Source: Salisapilia sapeloensis CBS 127946
Taxonomy: Eukaryota > Protista > Oomycota
Direction of reading: 5' to 3'
Length of the DNA stretch: 32,655 nucleotides
NCBI GenBank assembly: GCA_023334545.1
Contig: JAADVB010000213.1
Coordinates: forward strand, 1 to 32,655
In this document: piece by piece, positions 1 through 17,515 of the stretch
Numbering within the stretch: position 1 is the stretch's first letter
How the letters are laid out: every line of letters starts with the position of its first letter
Notes under the pieces: model-generated
Database searches by the model: none
Seen by the model: only the letters and a program-made list of their open reading frames with translations
What the model was told of the DNA's origin: nothing
Made by a program: the position numbers and the translations under genes

Positions 1-1765
1 CTCCTTCTTGTTGCGCAAGATGTTGAAAGACGGCAGTGTATTGGGAGGTTAAGTGGGTGTATGCTAAGCCCCTCTGGAGTGCTGTTGAAAGCGAGGGCTT
101 CTTGGTGGTTGGTCGACTGCTTCGTATAAACGTTCGCGTCGATTCACTGGGTTAGCATGTTTATACAAACGGCTTGTGGAATTCTAGTAACTTGAGTGGT
201 GTGCAAATGAGTCTGGACTGAAGTCCGTGCCAAATTTCTCTTCAGCACTAGTAATTTGAAGTAGATTGTGTATGTTGCCTCTCTAATGTATCCTTGGTCG
301 TTTCTTTCGCTTTATCTAAGCAGATGAAAACTGCTCTAACTGTCGATGGACTGTATCTTCAAGTAAGATGGTTACCATCGCGCAACACAGTAGTTCTAAC
401 GCCTACAAGTACTGCCTGGAACAAAAATTTGGAGACATTTGAAAGATATTGGCATGTGCGCTGTAGTTAACAAGCCAATAGGTTTACTTGAAAAACTGTT
501 GATCTAGATCACTCATCAGTTCATTCGAGAAAGGAGTATGGAAATAGTGATCCTTCTCGACAGAATCACGGAAACTTTATCGATTTTTCCGTGATATCAA
601 AGAAGGATCCGTTTGAGTATGTGGCTCTGAATGGACATCTTCCAGAATTAGTCAAAACCGTACGCATTGTCGATGCCGGAGTCGTCGTCATCTAAACTGC
701 GTAGACGAAAACAGCTGGCTGTGCGGATCTCCTGCTCAGATCTTACCATGAAAGTCGAAGGTGAATGCCATGATATGAACAAATACGAGTATGAAATACA
801 TGCGCGCAGCTATCAGAACGATGAAGACGACGCTACAACAAAAAGCGTATATCAATGTAATGCAGCCATGATAGTGCTCCAATGGCTTGCGTGCACCAAT
901 GCTAGGATTAGATACTTGGCTTCTATGCTTGCAGCATTTAAGCCGGTAACTAATGGCGAAGTACAAGCAAGAATTTACTCTATCCGTTTCTCTTCTCAAG
1001 TTAGTGAATGCAAACCACTTAGGGCGCAACATATACGAACATTTATACAAGAAATAATAAGTAGATGGTCGGTTAACTATGAAGTCATTTGGCTCCTGTT
1101 GCGATAGCTCGCCTACCAAAACGGAGGCTCGCCTTCTCACCGGTTACAATTTTGTCTCCTCATTCCATCCAAAACCAGATAAACTACTGCACTAGTAGGA
1201 ATATTCAGATCAATTTCAAAGTTACACTGGTTTATCTCCACGTTCGTACGAATCAAGATGGAAGCGTTCCACCTTGTCCGTTGTGTCGGACAGGGATAAA
1301 GTAGGATCATCAAGATATTCCAATGGCGGCCATACACACATACACATACAAATGGAGGATTCAGACTGGAGGTCAAAGCCTCATGGGATAACGTTGATTT
1401 CATCGCAAGTCCACCAAGCGTTGGTCGAACCTGTCTCGAGATGAGCTGGGTTAATCCAAAGTCATCAGCATACTCCGTCTACACTACAGATCGCTCATGT
1501 CCAGTTTCTGTTAATTAACCGGAGCGTTGAATGTTCTCAACATAACCATTGGTTAATACTGCCTGGGGCGGCGACATTCGGTAATGCTAATCACTGCGAT
1601 ATCGGTCGATGAAGTCAAATTGAAGAGTGAGCTTTCTGTTTGCTTGATATAGAAATGACTGGAGCAGAGCATACATGAATTTCTACCAATCCGAATGCTG
1701 TAAAAATGCATTCTAACAAGTTAGGAACGAGTTCCATACTTAACTTGCGATCGGAACACGTCAAG

Positions 1766-2157
1766 ATGGCAGCCCGTCAAGGAGCTCGGAAATGGCTCTC
1801 GAATTTGTTTGGGGATGCCGCTGGTGCTGGAGCGTCATCCTCGGGAGGCCCGAAGTCCAAGTCAGTTGCAAAAGAACGGCTGCAGATTATTCTGGCACAT
1901 CAGAGAGGCAGCCAACTGCTTGCCGGCGTCGACCTCGACAAACTCCAATCGGAGCTCTTGGAATGCGTCCAGCGTCACATTCAAGTTGCCAATGGCGCCA
2001 ACATCAACATTGCAGGTACCTAGTTGCTCTTGTATGCAAAGATACGTGGAGTAGGTGGTAACTTTGGTTTTTGCTAGTGAAAAATGAGGGCGAACTCGAC
2101 ATTTTTGAGATGCAGGTGCCGGTGGATGGAGCTGGACAGTCGCAGGAGAAGAGATAA
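1766..2157 (+). CDS. minE: Cell division topological specificity factor MinE (nuclear-encoded, probably mitochondrial), 109 aa, 2 exons
   Basis: Exons 1766-2015 and 2078-2157, separated by a 62-nt phase-1 intron (GTACCT...TTTGCTAG). Spliced product: MAARQGARKWLSNLFG...SKSVAKERLQIILAHQRGSQLLAGVDLDKLQSELLECVQRHIQVANGANINIAVKNEGELDIFEMQVPV. This matches bacterial MinE (AKERLQII motif; C-terminal D-I/V-x-E-x-x-V strand). Splicing restores the C-terminal strand that the ORF track lacks. Confidence 0.92.
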
Positions 2158-3116
2158 GTTTGAGTGGTTGCATAAGAAGGAAATACAAGGAAAGGAATCA
2201 TATCAGTAAACGACACTGTTATCAGAAGCAAGACTCTAGTACGTTGCCCGTGTCCAAGGATGCCGAACGAGTAAATCCTTCGCTACTGCACATCCTCTCA
2301 ATTTTCAGTCGTACGCAAGAGCTACTTGTATCTTTATAACCGACGTTCGAAGCTTCCCACTTGGCATCATCATTATAAAAGCTACTCAGATCTCAATTCT
2401 CCTAACAAAGACTACGAATCAGACGCTAAAGGCTACAATCGTCTCGTGAAGACGGAAGAAGGTGGGATGAGTATTTCCAACACGGAAATCAACGCTCTCT
2501 ACTGATCCAATCAACATCCGTAAGAAGTCACTCAATAGCTATTTTAAAACAGGTTATAGCACACTCCTTCGCATGATCAATCTGTCTGGTAACTGCGTGG
2601 GATGGTACGGCGCTTTGCTTGATAGCGCCTCTTCATGATCCGTGCTGACCACGAATAAAGATACTTTCTCCGACCATGAGATCATGCAGCCGTAGATTCC
2701 TCTATCTTTTGTTCGAAAGCAGACAGGGCATATCCGCCTCTTTGGTACCAACAAATTCATTAAAAACATCGATCTTTGGACCTTTCTCCGCGCATTTCCA
2801 GACTGACAGATGATGACTAGCGGCATCCAGGTGGTCTGCTTCGTCCCTAAGTCATTTAAGTTCTTGCGCTCGACGCCGGCAGTAGTGTCAAGGTCGAGGA
2901 AAGATAGCCCAACGCAATAAGTAACGCGGCTCTTAGCCTCTTTGTTCGCGTCAACAGCCACTAGATTCCAGTGGAGCACCTGCACACGTTACGTCCAGTC
3001 TCTTGAGCTGACAAAAAACATTCTTCCTCACGTTCCCTCTCGGGTGCAGACACCTCTGACCTCGTAGCAACTTGTCTTTCGTTCAAAACGGCATAAGCTC
3101 AACTGCTACGGCGTGC

Positions 3117-6100
3117 ATGCATAGACCCGACCAACTGCACGTAGGATCACCGTCTCCTCCTACGAGTAGGATCTACCACTCGTATCTAGCTCACAAATCG
3201 CCCTGCAGTCCAGACTTCCAAATCGTCAATTCACCGACAGCCCACCGGTCACCAAGTCCAACGACGATTTCGCCAGAAGCATTAGAGTCCGACCGGACGT
3301 CATCTCCTGTGCCCTATAGACGGACCTACAGTCACTCGCATCCCTTGACAGCTATCTTGGGCGGTCGAGTGGATGCATCTACAAGTGCTCTGAGCTCCCC
3401 AGGAGATGTCCTTCACTCTAGCATCCAGTATACTTCTACGAATGCAGGGACTCGAGGCTCCCTCCTTCCTATCACACCCCCTGGAGATCATCCGGAGCTG
3501 CAAAAGAAATCATCCTTCTGGCTACTACACTTTGAGTGGCAAAAAGCTCGAGCACACTTGCGTCGCCTATGTTTCTGGGGTCTCGTTGTCGCAGTCTTTG
3601 CCTCAGCATTCGGTCTCACCTACGTCATTCCGAGTGATTTGCAGTCTCAAGCGCCTGTAGTAGTCGGCAGTCTTCTCAGCCTCTTGTCCTCATGCTTCAT
3701 TCTCGTCTCGTTCACATGTGCCAAGACTCACCGGCGATTTCCGAACGAAATCCTAGTGTACGTAGCTCTATGTGAGCTCGGCCTAGCCATCCTCTCTATC
3801 GTCCACGTCGCCATGTACTGTTCCAGTGGCGAGTCCGTCACTCGTCGAACGTGCGCGATGCAGTCTATAACGACATGCAGCGTCCTCTCCGGCGTGCGTT
3901 TATTCCTCTTATGCGGCAGTGTTGGCTGGTTCGCGTCGGCAATCTTCCAGCTCTTTGTCGCTGTCTCGAATCCCTTCGCCGACCACAAGTCGCAGCTGAA
4001 GCTCTATCATCTAGTCGTCTGGACTGCTTCAACCATAATGGCAGTAGCCATTCCTCTCATCCTTTTTTCCAACGGGTTCCAGAGACAGTATGACATGACA
4101 AGTGAAGAGATATGTAGTACAGCCAGCTTACTCTTTCCTCTCTTGCCTCGTGTCGAGTCCAAGAGGGACTTGGAGTGGCGTGTGAGTCAGTGGAAATCAC
4201 TTGTACTGCTCTATTGGGGAGCTTTCCTCGGTCTCGTCGTCCTCCTTGTCATTGCAGCTCAATTCACCTTGATCATAAGCTGGTGGCGATCCAACAGCGG
4301 GACGGTGATCGCCTTGAAAGCTCGAAGACGGATGATGAAACGCATGACAGTGTACGTCCATTCGTTGAACGCCACTTGGCTCTTCATCCTCGCGTCGTTC
4401 TTTGTCTACTGGTCCAATGACACTGCTCTCCAGCAGCTTCCATCTTCGTATGGTCGCATGAGCATCCATACACCCAATACGTCTACGACGAGAAACACAG
4501 GTGCGCCTCATGTCCTCGTTGCGTTATTCCAGTACTTGTTGTCAGCAAAAGGCTTTTGTCTTGGTGTCGTGTGGATACTCGTGAACCGATGGGGTTTCGC
4601 ATGTCTCCGGTCTCATCGAGACACTAGTGAAGAGGAATCCAACGGGCAGCATACGAATCCAGCTACCTACAGCGATTCGAGTCCACACGACCTCTTCTCC
4701 AGTCCCGAGTTTGAGCGTCAGCATCGTCTAGGAAGAGCCCTCCAATCCGTCGGGTCGGCTTCCTCTCTCCTATCGTCTCGATCGTCCAAGACGTCGACCC
4801 AAAGCACGGAAACGCTGCAACAAGAGATCATTTATTACACCGTGTCAGGCATCACAAAAGCCATCTTGCATGCTTCTCAGTCCCATGACACGCACCAGTT
4901 CTTCCAGCAGCTTCTCGTCGGAGCTGAACGAGATCCTACCTTTGCCAACGTCACCTTCTTCTCTCACGTCCAGAGCGTTGACATGGTCAACTCGCCTCGT
5001 GCCTTTTGTGCCCCGACATCTCGCATGCAGACTGTCCCGGACCACTTAATGTCAGGTGGGAGCACGTCGCCGCCGCGTCGATCATCTACGCAATGTCAAT
5101 CGTATGGCCAAAACCAGCTCAGCTCGACTTTCTTGCGGGCTAGTGCCTACTTTACTCGTTTGTCCCAAGAGCACGTTTCGTCTAGAAGTAGCATCGGTCG
5201 TTTCTCCCTCTATCCAGTCTCCCACGTCCCGTTCGAACTCTTTGAGCAGGAGATTGAGCTCCAGAGTAATCAGTCCCCTACAGCCAAATCGTCTCCGCTC
5301 TTTGCAGGTCTCAAACGGTCCGCGACGAATGTCTGGAGTAAGCCTAGTAGCTTGGAACATCCGAAACCCAAGGTCTTTATCGACTATGCTCCAGCAGAGT
5401 TCAGGTCGATACGTCTCGCGTTTGGTCTATCAGACGAAACGTACTTAGCGTCGTTCCGTGCGACGGCGAAAGAACGCGTGAGTGGTGGATCGAGTGGTGC
5501 GTTCATGTTCTTTTCAGGTGACAACGCTTTGATTGTGAAGAGCATGAAAGAGAAGGAGTGTCGGAAGCTCGTGAGAATGGTACCCAAGTACGCTGAGTAC
5601 ATCAAGACGCACTCCAAGAGTCGTATCATTCGTTTCTTTGGTTGCCATCGCATTCGACTGTACGGACGCAACTTTTACTTTGTCGTCATGTCCAACGTCC
5701 TCCATAGTGTCAAGCACACGCCGACGATCAGTGAAAAGTATGACGTGAAAGGGTCGTGGGTGGATCGAGTGGCCAAGCGACCGCAGGAAGGAGAGGAAGT
5801 GACGTGCTCGGATTGTAATGCCAGCTACGCCTTTGGTCTCGACGATGACTGTCACATGCTTCAGGACCACTACCATCGTCCGGATATGATTTATAAAGAC
5901 CTCGATCTGAAGCGGTCGCTCCACCTCGCGCCACAAGTAGCTCAGAGCCTGTACCTGCAACTGGAGGAAGATTGTGAATTTTTGAATTCCATGGGTATCA
6001 TGGACTACTCTTTGCTCGTTGGCATTCACAAGTGCCGACTGCAGGAACCGTATCACGAACACGAAGCCACACCGTCTAACCACATGGACAGCTTGTACGG

Positions 6101-6347
6101 GCACAAGGACTCGACGGTGAGTCAGAACTTGGAACCGATTGAAGACGCCGGGCACGGTCCGGAAGAAGTCTACTTTGTCGGTATCATTGACATTTTACAA
6201 GAGTGGGATTGGGCCAAGCAATTGGAAAAGGCTGGAAAAGTCTTGATGGGGAAACCGTCCCAAGGCATCTCGGCCGTCGACCCGGATACGTACTCTAGAC
6301 GATTTAAACTGCGCGTGCGTGAGATTTTGCAATTGCAAGAGGAATGA
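3117..6347 (+). CDS. GPCR-PIPK fusion: multi-TM GPCR-like domain plus phosphatidylinositol phosphate kinase domain (oomycete GK/PIPK-D family)
   Basis: Single long ORF; first ATG at 3117 (the track starts at TTG 3072). It has a run of hydrophobic segments at aa ~166-505. The C-terminal PIPK domain carries GGSSGAFMFFS..LIVKSM, YDVKGS, YKDLD, MDYSLL and YFVGIIDILQEW. The linker contains LQQEIIYYTVSGI, resembling the conserved LRxGI-type motif. Confidence 0.93.
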   Translation: MHRPDQLHVGSPSPPTSRIYHSYLAHKSPCSPDFQIVNSPTAHRSPSPTTISPEALESDRTSSPVPYRRTYSHSHPLTAILGGRVDASTSALSSPGDVLHSSIQYTSTNAGTRGSLLPITPPGDHPELQKKSSFWLLHFEWQKARAHLRRLCFWGLVVAVFASAFGLTYVIPSDLQSQAPVVVGSLLSLLSSCFILVSFTCAKTHRRFPNEILVYVALCELGLAILSIVHVAMYCSSGESVTRRTCAMQSITTCSVLSGVRLFLLCGSVGWFASAIFQLFVAVSNPFADHKSQLKLYHLVVWTASTIMAVAIPLILFSNGFQRQYDMTSEEICSTASLLFPLLPRVESKRDLEWRVSQWKSLVLLYWGAFLGLVVLLVIAAQFTLIISWWRSNSGTVIALKARRRMMKRMTVYVHSLNATWLFILASFFVYWSNDTALQQLPSSYGRMSIHTPNTSTTRNTGAPHVLVALFQYLLSAKGFCLGVVWILVNRWGFACLRSHRDTSEEESNGQHTNPATYSDSSPHDLFSSPEFERQHRLGRALQSVGSASSLLSSRSSKTSTQSTETLQQEIIYYTVSGITKAILHASQSHDTHQFFQQLLVGAERDPTFANVTFFSHVQSVDMVNSPRAFCAPTSRMQTVPDHLMSGGSTSPPRRSSTQCQSYGQNQLSSTFLRASAYFTRLSQEHVSSRSSIGRFSLYPVSHVPFELFEQEIELQSNQSPTAKSSPLFAGLKRSATNVWSKPSSLEHPKPKVFIDYAPAEFRSIRLAFGLSDETYLASFRATAKERVSGGSSGAFMFFSGDNALIVKSMKEKECRKLVRMVPKYAEYIKTHSKSRIIRFFGCHRIRLYGRNFYFVVMSNVLHSVKHTPTISEKYDVKGSWVDRVAKRPQEGEEVTCSDCNASYAFGLDDDCHMLQDHYHRPDMIYKDLDLKRSLHLAPQVAQSLYLQLEEDCEFLNSMGIMDYSLLVGIHKCRLQEPYHEHEATPSNHMDSLYGHKDSTVSQNLEPIEDAGHGPEEVYFVGIIDILQEWDWAKQLEKAGKVLMGKPSQGISAVDPDTYSRRFKLRVREILQLQEE

Positions 6348-6506: not shown

Positions 6507-7157
6507 TTAGATGTTGACAGAGTAGGACATCTCTTCGTCTTGCGGTAGCTCGTTGAAGTGCTTGGTGCAGAGGTTGTCCGTACGTTCGTATGCTTGTTTT
6601 AGGCATCCGTCTTTGATGCACCGCTTACCACCGCCATGTGCCCAGCAAAGACCTTTGGAGATAGCGATTTTATCGCATGTCGTGTCTTTGCACTTGGTAC
6701 CGCCGCCGTGCGACCAGCAAAGTCGTCGCGACTTGGCACGGTTTTCGCATCCAGGCTGCATGCACTGGGTCGATCCACCATGTTTCCAGCACCTGCCATA
6801 GTGCTTTGCGCGACTGTTACAGTCGTGCTCGATACATCGCTTTCCACCGCCGTGCTTGACACATAAGCCTTTGTCAACGACGTACTGGTTGCAATCGTCC
6901 ACTTTACAAACGCGGTTGGCTGGACGAGGCGAGTTACTCTTGCTACCAGTTGCGACGGCACGAGTGGGAACTGGAGGCATCTCCTCGGCTGTTGCCGGCT
7001 CTTGATGCATATACACCTTCGTGGGTGAGTGCATCATTGAAAACGAAGAGGCATGCGGGGCATGGAATTGGTGATTGCCATCGAGGATGAACTGCAAGGA
7101 CGACTTGGACATAGAGTCTCTTTGGTCAAATTCGCTTTGGGTGTAGGACATCGTCAT
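6507..7157 (-). CDS. WRKY19-like zinc-finger repeat protein (five C-x4-C...C-x2-H-GG repeats), 216 aa
   Basis: Five ~24-aa repeats such as CKDTTCDKIAISKGLCWAHGGG at 6558-6908. ATG at 7157 lies about 50 nt downstream of a clean INR+FPR. There is no WRKYGQK motif, so this is not a true WRKY factor. Confidence 0.88.
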   Translation of the reverse strand: MTMSYTQSEFDQRDSMSKSSLQFILDGNHQFHAPHASSFSMMHSPTKVYMHQEPATAEEMPPVPTRAVATGSKSNSPRPANRVCKVDDCNQYVVDKGLCVKHGGGKRCIEHDCNSRAKHYGRCWKHGGSTQCMQPGCENRAKSRRLCWSHGGGTKCKDTTCDKIAISKGLCWAHGGGKRCIKDGCLKQAYERTDNLCTKHFNELPQDEEMSYSVNI

Positions 7158-7190
7158 AGAGGCTGCAAGTGGCGGTTTACTCTTTGCGTT

Positions 7191-7206
7191 GCAAACTAAA
7201 AAATGA
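7191..7206 (-). promoter_or_regulatory. Oomycete INR+FPR core promoter of the WRKY19-like gene
   Basis: The minus strand reads TCATTTTTTAGTTTGC, matching the YCAYTYY initiator followed by a MWTTTNC-like flanking element. Confidence 0.7.
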
Positions 7207-9147
7207 TCTCTTTCAAGCTGCCATCGAGTCGAGTTAGCTATTTACATCGTACGATCGAGCTGAAGCGGCGATGCAATGCGCTCATATGATACCGCGGCGT
7301 AGCCAATTGGCTGCTTTTCAGGAATGACAGACGGTATGGTCGAAGTGCCGAAACCAAGATGGGCGCCTCAACGGTCGTACCTACATGACGCTTGAGTGAC
7401 CATCCGTCTTCGGCATCATTAATAGAGTGTGTCGCTGCGAACGATGGGATGCAAAAAGCTTTTGAGCTCACACCAAACGACGTCAATAGGTTAAAAAGGA
7501 GATACTCGGGATGGAATAAACCCCGCTGACGTCCGTTGTAAAACATCCCTACGATTTCTTTTGCGGCAGTAATGGTCAGGGAAGCTACTCTGGTGACGTT
7601 TGAAACTCACACCAGCTTGACTGGAAGAAATAAGCCAACGGCTTTGTAATTGCCAAGTGCATATCACACTGTCGACCTTCAAACCTTCGACAATACAGCA
7701 ATGTTTCGTGCATTTGCTGTCGTCATAACCTTCACGTCCCACTTGTCTGCTCTCAAACTTGTAGATGACCACATCGGGTAGTGTCGACTATCCGCTACAA
7801 CTTATACCTCTAGTATGACAGAAATTCGTTATATTAAGTCGATGATAGACTAAACTTGAATGAGCATGCCATCAGAGCATTGTATGCAGGCAGATAAGAC
7901 TTTTCTATGCAGTTGGATGAGAAAGAGTGATCATAATTGGAGGTACTTCACCCACCGCCAACAATAGGAACGTTTACGAAAAGCAGTGTGCTCAGATTCG
8001 TTGGCTCACTCCTAAACCACTATCATCCGTCCGATTATGAGGCACGGTAAGTTCGTTTACGTCGACATACTAGGATGTCTTCAAGAAGGTTAGAGTTTCG
8101 TTTCATATGCATACATGGAGAGTTCCTCTCCCTATATCTATGCCTACTCGCCCACTTCTCTATTGCTATTGTAGCTGACGCAGCATGCTCGCTTGGCAAC
8201 AACTTTGTTTATTTTAATCTCTAGTTGCCATGTAGCCACCACATCTCTATCCTACCTAGTTCCTTTTATGTGCCAATATCTGATTTAAAGCTTTCGCACG
8301 CCGCCAAAGAGATTTTTATCCTCCTATCCTCTCTCAGTTCGTGCTTGGTTAGTTGAACTCTATCTTTATCATTTCCGAACCAGAACGAATGAGTCGCATG
8401 ACCCTACTATTCTAATATAAACGCCAAACTTCTCTTTGTCATTCGTGTCAGCTTCTCGTCACCATGTGACTTAATGAGTCACCAGACTTCTTTCGGAAGC
8501 TTGACGCATTCGACCACTGAAGTCTTTTTACACGCATGGCGTAACGCTGACGAATCCCGGGGGATTCCGTGGCTTGATTGATTCGTAGGGTCGAATGTAG
8601 GCTGGACGCAGTAACTGCCTTCGTACGTCTTCGCTACAAAGCTTACAATCACGGTAAAAAAGGATTCTACAAATGTCGTAACTGTACTAATATGTCGGCA
8701 AATCGAAGACGGTTGGATGGAATGTCATGGGATCGCATTTCGCCCAAGTTTCCAATTGTCTTTGTACCTACTTGTGATCTTGATCAGTACATGAAGTGTG
8801 TTCATTACAATTTTTAACCTATATCGTAGCATTATTTATATTTAACATACTACATGAACTATTCTTTACACATTACGGCTAGTTTTAGAGTTTAATTGAA
8901 GTAAATAATACATTATAAGAAGACAATACCTTCCCGCCAAATCTCATTATAAAATACTCATACTTGTAGACTAACGTTATTTTCTATGTTATAAAGCTAT
9001 TATTTCCGTACAGACCGAAAGCAAACCGCCGGTGCCATTGACGCCGCCTGCTGTCTTCGCATCTCCGTTCGAGTTCTTTCTAGCGTCCATACGCTCGTAG
9101 AACTCATCTCGACCGTACCATTCATCTAGCACAATACACTGTAAGCC

Positions 9148-11058
9148 ATGGATCTGCTTTCTTCGGACCGACAAGATGCTGTCCGTCTCATTCGCGAGCA
9201 TCTCACGTGTATCCTCTGGTACGTCCACAAGCTTCATAAGACACTGCAACGACACTTATATCATCTATACAGATAATCTAACGTGAATTATTTCTAATAT
9301 TCTAGTAAAAACCTCTTTGTCGAGCCACAAGCACTCGATTGTAAGCACAACTTTTGTGCCAATTGCATTTCATACTACCTCAGTAGAGCCGAGAGTTTCT
9401 GTCCTACTTGTCGACTACCAACGCGTCCGTCCGAGTCGACTAGGAATCAATCTCTCGAAAGCCTTCTAGCTGCTTGGAAAGTCGTCGAGCAGCAGCTACA
9501 AAACGTATCTGACGCGAATGTCGACAATGCCATCACTGCCAATATGGCTGAAAAGGTTTTCTCTGCCAATACTGACGATAATCCGATCGTTTGGAAACCA
9601 ACACCAGAATCATCCAACGCAAGTAGAGGCTCTGCTCCGTCTCAAAAGTGGAATGTAGACATTTCGTCTATTAAGCAGACGAGTGGAAAAGCACGAAAGA
9701 ATGGACAGAGCACGAGTACCTGTCGGTCTAATGCACTAGAGGTAGAAGTACATACATCGAATACCGGTGGTGGTAACACGAGTTTACTGGAAGACATGGC
9801 GTCTGACTCTGGCACCGGTGCATCTGTAGACAATGAGTCTTCCAGCGTCATGCAGACACAAGACTTGGACGCTTACATGTCAACGATCCGACAGCAGGAA
9901 GCAGATCTAGACCGTGCGACTTCTCCACCATCCAATCGCAAAGCCAAGAAACGGAAACGTGCGAGCGAGTACATTCCAACAGCTAACTTTGGCCATTCCA
10001 ACGTCCTTGCGAATATATTGCAATCGCAATCTTCCAATGAAGAAAAAGATGACAGTCAAGCCCGAATGCCATTCTCTCCTGACCTCTTATCAACTCCCCA
10101 GTCGAAACACAACAAGAAACGACAGTACGCTAGCTCTCATTGGGGCTCCACACGGGCACAGAAGGGGAATAAGACGTCCAAGGAGAAAAGTAGGGTTGAG
10201 AATAATGTAGCGGATACACCGAGTAAACAAGTGTGGCGGAGAAATTGGGAAGAGCCGGATCAATTGATCGAGGATCTCACCCAGACACCTACGTCAGACG
10301 ACGTCCAACAAGATGTAAACGCTCGATTAAATGCTGCTATGCAAGTAGAAGCGAAAGTAGAAGTGGAGACACTCGTCGATATACCGACAGATAAGTTCAT
10401 GTTCGTATCTACAGACGTACCACCAAAGAGGGCGAGACAGGTACTAGAAGCTTGCAAGCAGCTCGGCGCACGCTTCGGGCCGTCCTTTGACTGCTTCTAC
10501 GATGAAGAGCACAAGACGTATTCGACGTCTGTCACGCACTTGCTCACCCGCACCAATGCGTCTGGACGGTGTAAACGCACCGCAAAGTACATGCGAGCGT
10601 TGGCAGAAGGCTGCTACATCGTTGATGTGACATGGGTAGAAGATAGTGCTGCGTCGGGCAAGTGGATTACGGATATGGACAAATATGAAGTCATCGGAGA
10701 CATGTATAGTGACGCGACGCATAAGCCTCGGGAAGCAAGACAACGACGTTGGGTGTCTGGGAAACGTAACGAGATCTTTCGAGGACTGCACTTTGTTCTA
10801 TTGGATGAAGTGGACGCATTTGGCTTTCAAATGGACAGTTTGAATGAAATTGTAGGACATTTTGGAGGAAGGATGACGATGGAGATGGAGGAAATGGACA
10901 AGAAACAGTCTGTCGGGATCGTGCCGAACACCATGTCGTGTGAAGAGGCAAGAGCGTGTTTTGATCGGTGGCACAAACCGATTGTTCGAGTCACGTGGCT
11001 GTTCGATAGTATTAGTCATCTAGAAGTGCTTTCGTTTGATGACTACTATCCGTATTAA
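9148..11058 (+). CDS. BRCA1/BARD1-like protein: N-terminal C3HC4 RING plus C-terminal tandem BRCT, 607 aa, 2 exons
   Basis: Exons 9148-9218 and 9306-11058, separated by an 87-nt intron (GTACGT...TTCTAG) that splits the second RING Cys codon. Spliced RING: LTCILCKNLFVEPQALDCKHNFCANCISYYLSRAESFCPTCR. BRCT motifs RTAKY..ALAEG.YIV..TWV, GD....PREAR, IFRGL and PIVRVTWLFDSI resemble BRCA1. KAKKRKR is a candidate NLS. Confidence 0.9.
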
Positions 11059-16351: not shown

Positions 16352-17479
16352 TTACAGGTCAAGCAAGACCGAAATCTCGTTTTCTGAAATACTGTTCGCG
16401 TCGTAGTTAAAGCCATCTCCATGAAGACCAACGATTTTAATTGTGCCCGGGTCGTGGTCATGAATAAGTGTTAGGATGTTTATGTACTCTTCAGTAGGAC
16501 GCGAGAGAAAGTTTTCGTTGCCTGGAGATGGGTTCTTGTTCAAAAAGTAGTAGTGCGTTATCAGCTTCTCCACATTTGGAATCGCTTCGGCGATATCCAA
16601 TTCGCCACATCCACCAGGGTCACCCATGCCACGGCAATTGCATTGGTATTGAGAACTTCGAACTGCCTGTGCATTCAGCATCCAGATGGCTGGCAAGTCT
16701 GGCTTGCGGCCTGACTTTGGCATCTTTACACGAGTCGCAAACAGCTTCTTGCCGCCATCCCATCCATGATACCCGTGTTCGTCATGCCACCCGAGACACG
16801 AACCAGCACACTTAGCGTCCTGCATGATATTCACTTCATCCCCAGTCGCTATGCCGACACCAGCATATTTATTCGACGGATCGGAGGCATCCTCAAGTTT
16901 CCCATTAAAGCCGCTTCGAACTGTCTGCGGACTTCGCTCGGCAGTTCCGTAGTTTCGATTTTCCATGAAGACTAGATTGTTACTTGAGCCGCCCGAGTAG
17001 GACGAGACTTTATCCCATGAGCCTCTAGAGGAGCCATCAAAGACTGCAATATCCGAAATTTCCATCGGGCCGCGGAAGATGATAGAGACCTCTTCGCTCA
17101 TTGGACCGACCTTGGAATTCACCGAATGCTTCTTCTTGCTGCAGCTCTTGAGGTCAGTGACCATGTCATAGCTTCCGGAGCCTCCGGCATTACCACCAGT
17201 GTAGGCATGCTTGCCTTTGACATTTTGAGCATCTTTCAAAGCTGAACTCGGTACTTCGGACGTCCGGAAGTTACCTCTACCCGTGTCGCCTTTGTTTGCT
17301 TTTGGATCCAAGTAATCGTTCCCAGACGGAAGTTGATCTGGTGGGCTTACTTTCCCTTGCATGTACGCATTATCAGTCCAGTTTCCAACCTTTGCACTGT
17401 CCTGCAAAGCAGAGCTTTCACCGGTGATCAAGCACGCTGTGATCACACCTAGGCATACCCAAGATCGTTTCAGCAGCAT
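16352..17479 (-). CDS. Tos1/YJL171C-like putative glycosyl hydrolase (DUF2403 + DUF2401 type), secreted
   Basis: ATG 17479 opens a signal peptide. Motifs: VGPMSEEVSIIFRGPMEISDIAVF, KLFATRVKMP, DLPAIWMLNAQAVRSSQYQCNCRGMGDPGGCGELDIAE. Confidence 0.88.
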   Translation of the reverse strand: MLLKRSWVCLGVITACLITGESSALQDSAKVGNWTDNAYMQGKVSPPDQLPSGNDYLDPKANKGDTGRGNFRTSEVPSSALKDAQNVKGKHAYTGGNAGGSGSYDMVTDLKSCSKKKHSVNSKVGPMSEEVSIIFRGPMEISDIAVFDGSSRGSWDKVSSYSGGSSNNLVFMENRNYGTAERSPQTVRSGFNGKLEDASDPSNKYAGVGIATGDEVNIMQDAKCAGSCLGWHDEHGYHGWDGGKKLFATRVKMPKSGRKPDLPAIWMLNAQAVRSSQYQCNCRGMGDPGGCGELDIAEAIPNVEKLITHYYFLNKNPSPGNENFLSRPTEEYINILTLIHDHDPGTIKIVGLHGDGFNYDANSISENEISVLLDL

Positions 17480-17499
17480 GCTCGCCAAGTTTCTACGAC

Positions 17500-17515
17500 G
17501 CAAGTTTTAAAATGA
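17500..17515 (-). promoter_or_regulatory. INR+FPR core promoter of the Tos1-like gene
   Basis: The minus strand reads TCATTTTAAAACTTGC, 36 nt upstream of the ATG. Confidence 0.65.

Follow-up and report, generated by a model that had tools for sequence, protein, structure and literature searches.

Positions 1766-2157 of a contig from Salisapilia sapeloensis CBS 127946 are confirmed here as a single-copy nuclear oomycete MinE gene with one intron. From the literature and from reasoning about the protein's parts, we consider it probable that the product is imported into the mitochondrial matrix and regulates mitochondrial division by MinCD and FtsZ. The stretch that we analysed, which we call the window, is contig JAADVB010000213.1 (assembly GCA_023334545.1), positions 1-32,655 of the forward strand, 32,655 nucleotides in all.

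The gene lies on the + strand and has two exons. Exon 1 (1766..2015, 250 nt) carries codons 1-83 and the first base of codon 84, and exon 2 (2078..2157, 80 nt) completes codon 84 and encodes residues 85-109, which make up the last strand and the tail, followed by a TAA stop codon at 2155-2157. Between them is a spliceosomal intron of 62 nt (2016..2077) with GT..AG ends, which lies in phase 1 and contains in-frame stops. Read without splicing, the frame of exon 1 reaches a stop two codons inside the intron; removal of the intron rejoins the split valine codon (codon 84) and gives a frame of 330 nt encoding 109 amino acids. The preliminary description of this DNA had proposed a 109-residue MinE that is complete only once a 62-nt intron has been removed, and all of its coordinates and numbers proved exact.

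We aligned transcript contigs from four runs (X1-X4), which come from one study with at most three samples and whose RNA label in the run records is a guess, to positions 1300-2800 of the window. Of the words that we sampled from 1600-2400, each run contains 42-61%. In each of the four, a contig joins 2013 to 2076, which is equivalent to 2015|2078 given two ambiguous bases, with GT..AG ends, zero mismatches and 98-228 bases on whichever side of the junction is shorter. Neither the intron (2016-2077) nor the spacer at 1609-1737 was covered by contigs in any of the four runs. Since both are uncovered despite depths of 60-140 over the flanking exons, the guess that these runs contain RNA is reasonable. 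The 2015/2078 junction, which the preliminary description had wanted confirmed in RNA reads, is thus present as an exact 62-nt GT..AG skip in the contigs of four runs of a single study, with the RNA label a guess. We take transcription of MinE and splicing of the 62-nt intron as shown.

The contigs also bear on the ends of the gene. They begin at 1738 (X2) and 1746 (X4), giving a minimal 5′ untranslated region at 1738..1765 on the + strand. An in-frame ATG at 1706, 60 nt upstream, would add 20 residues and with them a possible presequence. No transcript contig reaches it, and in three orthologous loci the equivalent region either contains a stop or lacks an ATG. The start codon at 1766 stands. 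The upstream ATG could be picked by automatic gene callers. The CCAAT pentamer noted earlier at about 1685 is indeed present, at 1686..1690 on the + strand, but it carries no evidential weight: since CCAAT occurs 88 times in the window on both strands, or 2.7 per kb, it is no evidence for a promoter.

On the 3′ side, contigs end at 2179, 2303, 2463 and 2510, up to 353 nt beyond the MinE stop, and a separate low-depth contig follows at 2551-2768. The likely 3′ untranslated region is 2158..2510 (+ strand), which is the maximal reach of contigs that can give neither the true end nor the strand. Positions 2158-2510 and 2551-2768 belong either to an extended 3′ untranslated region or to an overlapping transcript, which could lie on either strand. 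Just 5′ of MinE, at 1359-1608, a high-coverage contig with no obvious open reading frame was present in all four runs. These contigs break where they meet a CA-rich simple repeat (1300-1358), and each lies partly elsewhere. The contig may be the untranslated end of a neighbouring gene.

MinE is widespread among oomycetes. A word search returned 44 proteins, many of them named MinE, of which 43 were of oomycete type. They come from Pythium, Globisporangium, Lagenidium, Phytophthora, Nothophytophthora, Plasmopara, Peronospora, Hyaloperonospora, Peronosclerospora and Albugo, and also from Aphanomyces, Saprolegnia, Achlya, Thraustotheca and unnamed environmental sequences. The orthologues are 58-82% identical to the window protein, which is itself absent from the protein collection searched, where the best matches are 79-80% identical. 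Many are named "cell division topological specificity factor MinE" by NCBI, UniRef or JGI. The novelty that the preliminary description implied is therefore absent, as NCBI and UniRef already call the orthologues MinE in many oomycetes. With annotations in genomes throughout the oomycetes, and with stramenopile Min genes on record since 2015, the gene's presence in oomycetes was already known.

Comparison with the orthologues showed how old the gene structure is. Phytophthora cinnamomi (P0017), Pythium oligandrum (P0004), Lagenidium giganteum (P0014) and Saprolegnia diclina (P0038) share the domain order and the C-terminus, while the window protein differs from them in the sequence and length of its linker and C-terminal tail. 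In correctly modelled orthologues ...NINIA is followed by VK.EG..D.FEMQVPV, as it is in the spliced C-terminus of the window protein. For three loci that we fetched, the sole GT..AG intron that reproduces the annotated protein interrupts the same valine codon in phase 1, with lengths of 67 nt in Pythium oligandrum, 58 nt in Saprolegnia diclina and 105 nt in Phytophthora cinnamomi. Because codon and phase are identical in all three, the intron predates the split between Saprolegniales and Peronosporales.

Several public MinE models (P0002, P0003, P0013, which is the NCBI model of Pythium insidiosum, P0019, P0033 and P0043) read through the conserved intron or a second one. The unrelated residues that follow ...NINIA in such models are annotation errors and not variant proteins. 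The practical gain of this work is a verified MinE gene model for the Salisapilia genome, together with the read-through error spotted in several public oomycete models.

The neighbourhood of the gene is eukaryotic. In P. oligandrum, S. diclina and P. cinnamomi, the first gene downstream of MinE is a BRCT (RING-BRCT) gene on the opposite strand (6595-9048 in locus L081, 6400-8713 in L082 and 6603-10197 in L083), and in the P. oligandrum locus it is followed by a Tos1 cell-wall gene. The window also has a BRCT gene (9544-11058) and a Tos1 gene (16352-17503). However, its BRCT gene is about 7 kb from MinE and has the other relative strand. Unlike the three orthologous loci, the window carries a GPCR-PIP kinase gene (3072-6347) and a CCCH zinc-finger gene (6507-7157) between MinE and BRCT. 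Nol11, La-RRM and DEAD-box helicase genes are further eukaryotic neighbours. The GPCR-PIP kinase gene is an unbroken frame of 1091 codons in which a seven-helix membrane region of Frizzled type is fused with a PIP5K catalytic domain, an arrangement typical of oomycetes.

We considered whether contaminating bacterial DNA in the assembly, or an open reading frame arisen by chance, could account for the gene. Apart from the bacterial type of the protein family, nothing points that way, and we give this explanation next to no probability. Because the position of the spliceosomal intron is conserved across oomycetes, the neighbours (GPCR-PIP kinase, BRCT, Nol11, La and DEAD-box) are eukaryotic, and spliced transcript contigs were found, contamination is excluded. 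Moreover, no minD is adjacent, in contrast to bacterial operons; in the bacterial records that we compared, minE directly follows minD. The preliminary description was thus right that MinE sits among eukaryotic genes and is no contaminant, a view to which the conserved intron, the neighbours, the proximity of BRCT and the spliced contigs all contribute. It was also right that the window holds no minC, minD or ftsZ, as tblastn with bacterial MinC and MinD gave a best E of 0.87 and the tubulin signature was absent.

Profile searches placed the protein in the MinE family. Exon 1 alone (83 residues) scored 46.9 bits against Pfam PF03776 (MinE), above the cut-off of 25, matching profile positions 1-48 of 68. 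The last third of the profile falls in exon 2. The PF03776 search that had been suggested as a check was therefore passed by the first exon alone. A profile built from the oomycete proteins hit MinE chains of known structure from Neisseria gonorrhoeae and E. coli, with alignments spanning almost all of each chain (E 7e-15 to 2e-12). On the NCBIfam bacterial equivalog models NF001422 and TIGR01215, full-length orthologues fell just under the cut-offs (55.4 and 50.9 against 58; 47.7 and 46.2 against 49.3), and exon 1 alone scored 43 and 41.2. These models were built for bacteria, and such scores fit a diverged eukaryotic branch of MinE.

For the fold, an AlphaFold model was made of the Phytophthora cinnamomi orthologue P0017, the closest full-length protein (82-84% identical), rather than of the window protein. 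The model has a weakly predicted N-terminal helix and a disordered linker, followed by a strand at 38-47, a helix at 58-72 and strands at 82-88 and 91-100, with a core pLDDT of 72-84. The best five PDB matches of this monomer are all MinE, from Neisseria and Helicobacter (TM by target 0.49-0.72), and its matches include the latent full-length Neisseria MinE. Judged by this model, the window protein is predicted to have the MinE dimerisation fold, which consists of strand beta-1, a helix and a two-strand hairpin.

Alignment with bacterial MinE divides the window protein into four parts, all encoded on the + strand. Near the N-terminus, residues 9-16 (KWLSNLFG; 1790..1813) form a putative amphipathic helix that aligns to the bacterial membrane-targeting sequence, matching residues 2-9 of the E. 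coli protein and the N-termini of beta- and gammaproteobacterial MinE. The hydrophobic moment over residues 1-15 is 0.54-0.61, and the P0017 model has a helix at the matching place with low confidence. An N-terminal amphipathic membrane-targeting helix is thus predicted to have been retained. KWLSNLFG resembles the betaproteobacterial form FLSFLLGE. An oomycete-specific linker rich in glycine, alanine and serine follows (residues 17-32; 1814..1861), which is 10-14 residues longer than in bacteria and has a pLDDT below 50 in the P0017 model.

The third part is the MinD-contact region (residues 33-47; 1862..1906), which corresponds to strand beta-1 of the latent form. Within it, A35-I42 (AKERLQII) are identical to A18-I25 of E. 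coli K-12 MinE, and one of these residues is an arginine matching E. coli R21, which in the E. coli system is generally known to be required for MinD stimulation. The region was placed by alignment to chain 3r9j_C, and in entries 3r9i and 3r9j it is E. coli A18-I25 that contacts MinD. In an alignment of 19 sequences, K36-L43 and H45-Q50 are invariant. The fourth part, placed from alignments and the P0017 model, is the dimerisation (topological specificity) domain, of which residues 51-83 (loop, helix and strand beta-2) are encoded at 1916..2015. Pairwise dN/dS values are 0.11-0.35, with synonymous sites close to saturation. Thus, oomycete MinE is under purifying selection.

Bacterial-type mitochondrial FtsZ/Min machinery has reportedly been described in several protist groups, including stramenopiles, by Leger et al. 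in PNAS in 2015. That work reportedly demonstrated localisation only for Dictyostelium and for a jakobid protein expressed in yeast, and for no oomycete. Other work describes FtsZ with MinC, MinD and MinE as the ancestral mitochondrial division system, widespread among eukaryotes (PMC7050145), and regards the nuclear minD and minE genes of stramenopiles as likely mitochondrial (10.1101/109975). Mitochondrial MinC, MinD and FtsZ have been predicted in the stramenopiles Nannochloropsis and Ectocarpus (PMC3499364). For oomycetes, the only mention of localisation of, or experiments on, MinD, MinE or FtsZ in the literature that we searched was of Phytophthora infestans FtsZ, which is among listed mitochondrial proteins (PMC5322657). 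Assignment of the window protein to mitochondria agrees with these reports, and nothing that we found contradicts it.

A model that fits our data begins with transcription of the MinE gene and removal of the 62-nt intron, which yields a 109-residue protein of four parts (helix, linker, contact segment and dimerisation domain). This protein would be imported into the mitochondrial matrix, where its contact segment may bind membrane-bound dimers of ATP-bound MinD. MinE would then stimulate the MinD ATPase and displace MinC, and the MinCD inhibitor would thereby be excluded from the site at which the mitochondrial FtsZ ring assembles. In this model, MinE would act as a regulator of an ancestral, bacterial-type inner division machinery.

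MinE and MinD could instead have been kept in oomycete mitochondria for another task, such as the spacing of nucleoids or the patterning of membrane proteins. The link between MinE and FtsZ is putative, and bacterial MinDE gradients are generally known to move other membrane proteins in vitro. As the parts needed for the classical cycle (membrane helix, contact segment and dimerisation domain) are all conserved, we judge such a replacement of function very unlikely and prefer a role in division.

The N-terminus of the protein is basic and amphipathic, with no acidic residue up to position 16, but it is very short and coincides with the membrane helix. Inspection of the sequence revealed no clear cleavable presequence. 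Ahead of the helix the window protein has eight residues, a short basic stretch, while MinE of Saprolegniales has none. It is conceivable, although we would sooner expect otherwise, that the membrane helix and the Gly/Ala/Ser linker double as the import signal and stay on the mature protein, with no separate cleavable presequence. If this were true, a dual-use helix would be a compact answer to the need of MinE for a free N-terminal helix. The N-terminal arrangement is the one aspect of oomycete MinE that might merit further study.

We also examined where the gene came from. We scanned 185,579 bacterial and archaeal genomes with two peptide patterns taken from the query. The best 80 matches were all from gammaproteobacteria, betaproteobacteria or unclassified Pseudomonadota, with 40-57% identity over the core, in a scan that, because it was built on those two patterns, is biased toward sequences that share them. 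The alphaproteobacterial MinE proteins that we sampled, all plasmid-borne (Paracoccus, Thioclava, Rhizobium, Sinorhizobium and Ciceribacter), were 27-40% identical. Locally, oomycete MinE is up to 55% identical to gamma- and betaproteobacterial MinE versus 34-41% to the plasmid-borne alphaproteobacterial proteins, figures that come from a biased sampling.

A maximum-likelihood tree was built from oomycete and proteobacterial MinE (53 sequences, 86 columns). All oomycetes grouped in a single clade (100/100), whose long branch had no resolved bacterial sister. Grouping of oomycetes with alphaproteobacteria was not rejected by the AU test (p 0.34), in a data set of 86 columns with the plasmid-borne alphaproteobacterial sequences on long branches.

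These data bear on the idea that an ancestor of the stramenopiles acquired MinE laterally from a beta- or gammaproteobacterium and not from the mitochondrial endosymbiont, an origin that would still be compatible with action in mitochondria. Such a transfer would explain the taxonomy of the best 80 matches and the lower identity of the sampled alphaproteobacterial proteins, and in the tree the oomycete clade joins at an unresolved base among betaproteobacterial rows. Nevertheless, we consider it improbable. The patterns that biased the scan came from the query itself, alphaproteobacteria were represented in the sample only by plasmid genes from Rhodobacterales and Rhizobiales, whose branches are long, and the AU test, on 86 usable columns, did not reject the alphaproteobacterial grouping. 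The literature, moreover, views the system as derived from the endosymbiont (PMC7050145).

Alternatively, oomycetes could have reused a MinE left over from a plastid, cyanobacterial or red-algal in origin, that they have since lost. Plastid Min systems do exist, some hypotheses, as is generally known, give oomycetes a photosynthetic ancestry, and the sequences in our tree are those of oomycetes and proteobacteria. However, the contact segment and the N-terminal helix closely resemble those of proteobacterial MinE, and oomycetes have no plastid to divide. In addition, minD and minE occur in no stramenopile plastid genome, and the nuclear copies are likely mitochondrial (10.1101/109975). This origin is highly improbable, and descent with the mitochondrial division system is the reading that we retain.

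The oomycete gene thus belongs to an inner division machinery that the mitochondria of many protists have kept and that animals, fungi and plants have lost. Every sampled oomycete has MinE, and its mitochondrial assignment is already in the literature; the result is correct but ordinary. Oomycetes include major pathogens of crops and fish, and their hosts have no mitochondrial Min system, which makes the system a sensible topic for basic cell biology. In the literature that we searched, we found no report on the position of an oomycete Min protein, or on its oscillation in a tubular mitochondrion.

Compared with bacterial MinE (E. coli K-12 b1174, Neisseria gonorrhoeae 2KXO/6U6P and the complex 3R9J), the window protein has in common the N-terminal helix, the AKERLQII segment (in E. 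coli) and a strand-helix-strand-strand domain, although identity to the E. coli protein is 25% over the whole alignment. The oomycete gene differs from its bacterial counterparts in being nuclear, in bearing an intron and in lying outside a minCDE operon. At the protein level, the window protein has eight extra residues ahead of the helix, the linker, 10-14 residues longer, takes the place of a bacterial basic patch (RKK or EKKK), and the oomycete loop after the contact segment is longer by one residue. Like the mitochondrial FtsZ/MinCDE systems that Leger et al. (2015) reportedly found in protists, it is a nuclear-encoded Min protein of bacterial type, here in a stramenopile without a plastid. 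Plastid MinE, such as Arabidopsis MinE1, belongs to the same family, and in plants its gene is likewise nuclear and its product works with MinD on the FtsZ ring (PMC13650779). In contrast to oomycete MinE, the plastid protein is of cyanobacterial origin and plastid-targeted, and in plants MinC has been replaced by ARC3 (PMC13650779); this likeness is drawn from family, gene location and partners.
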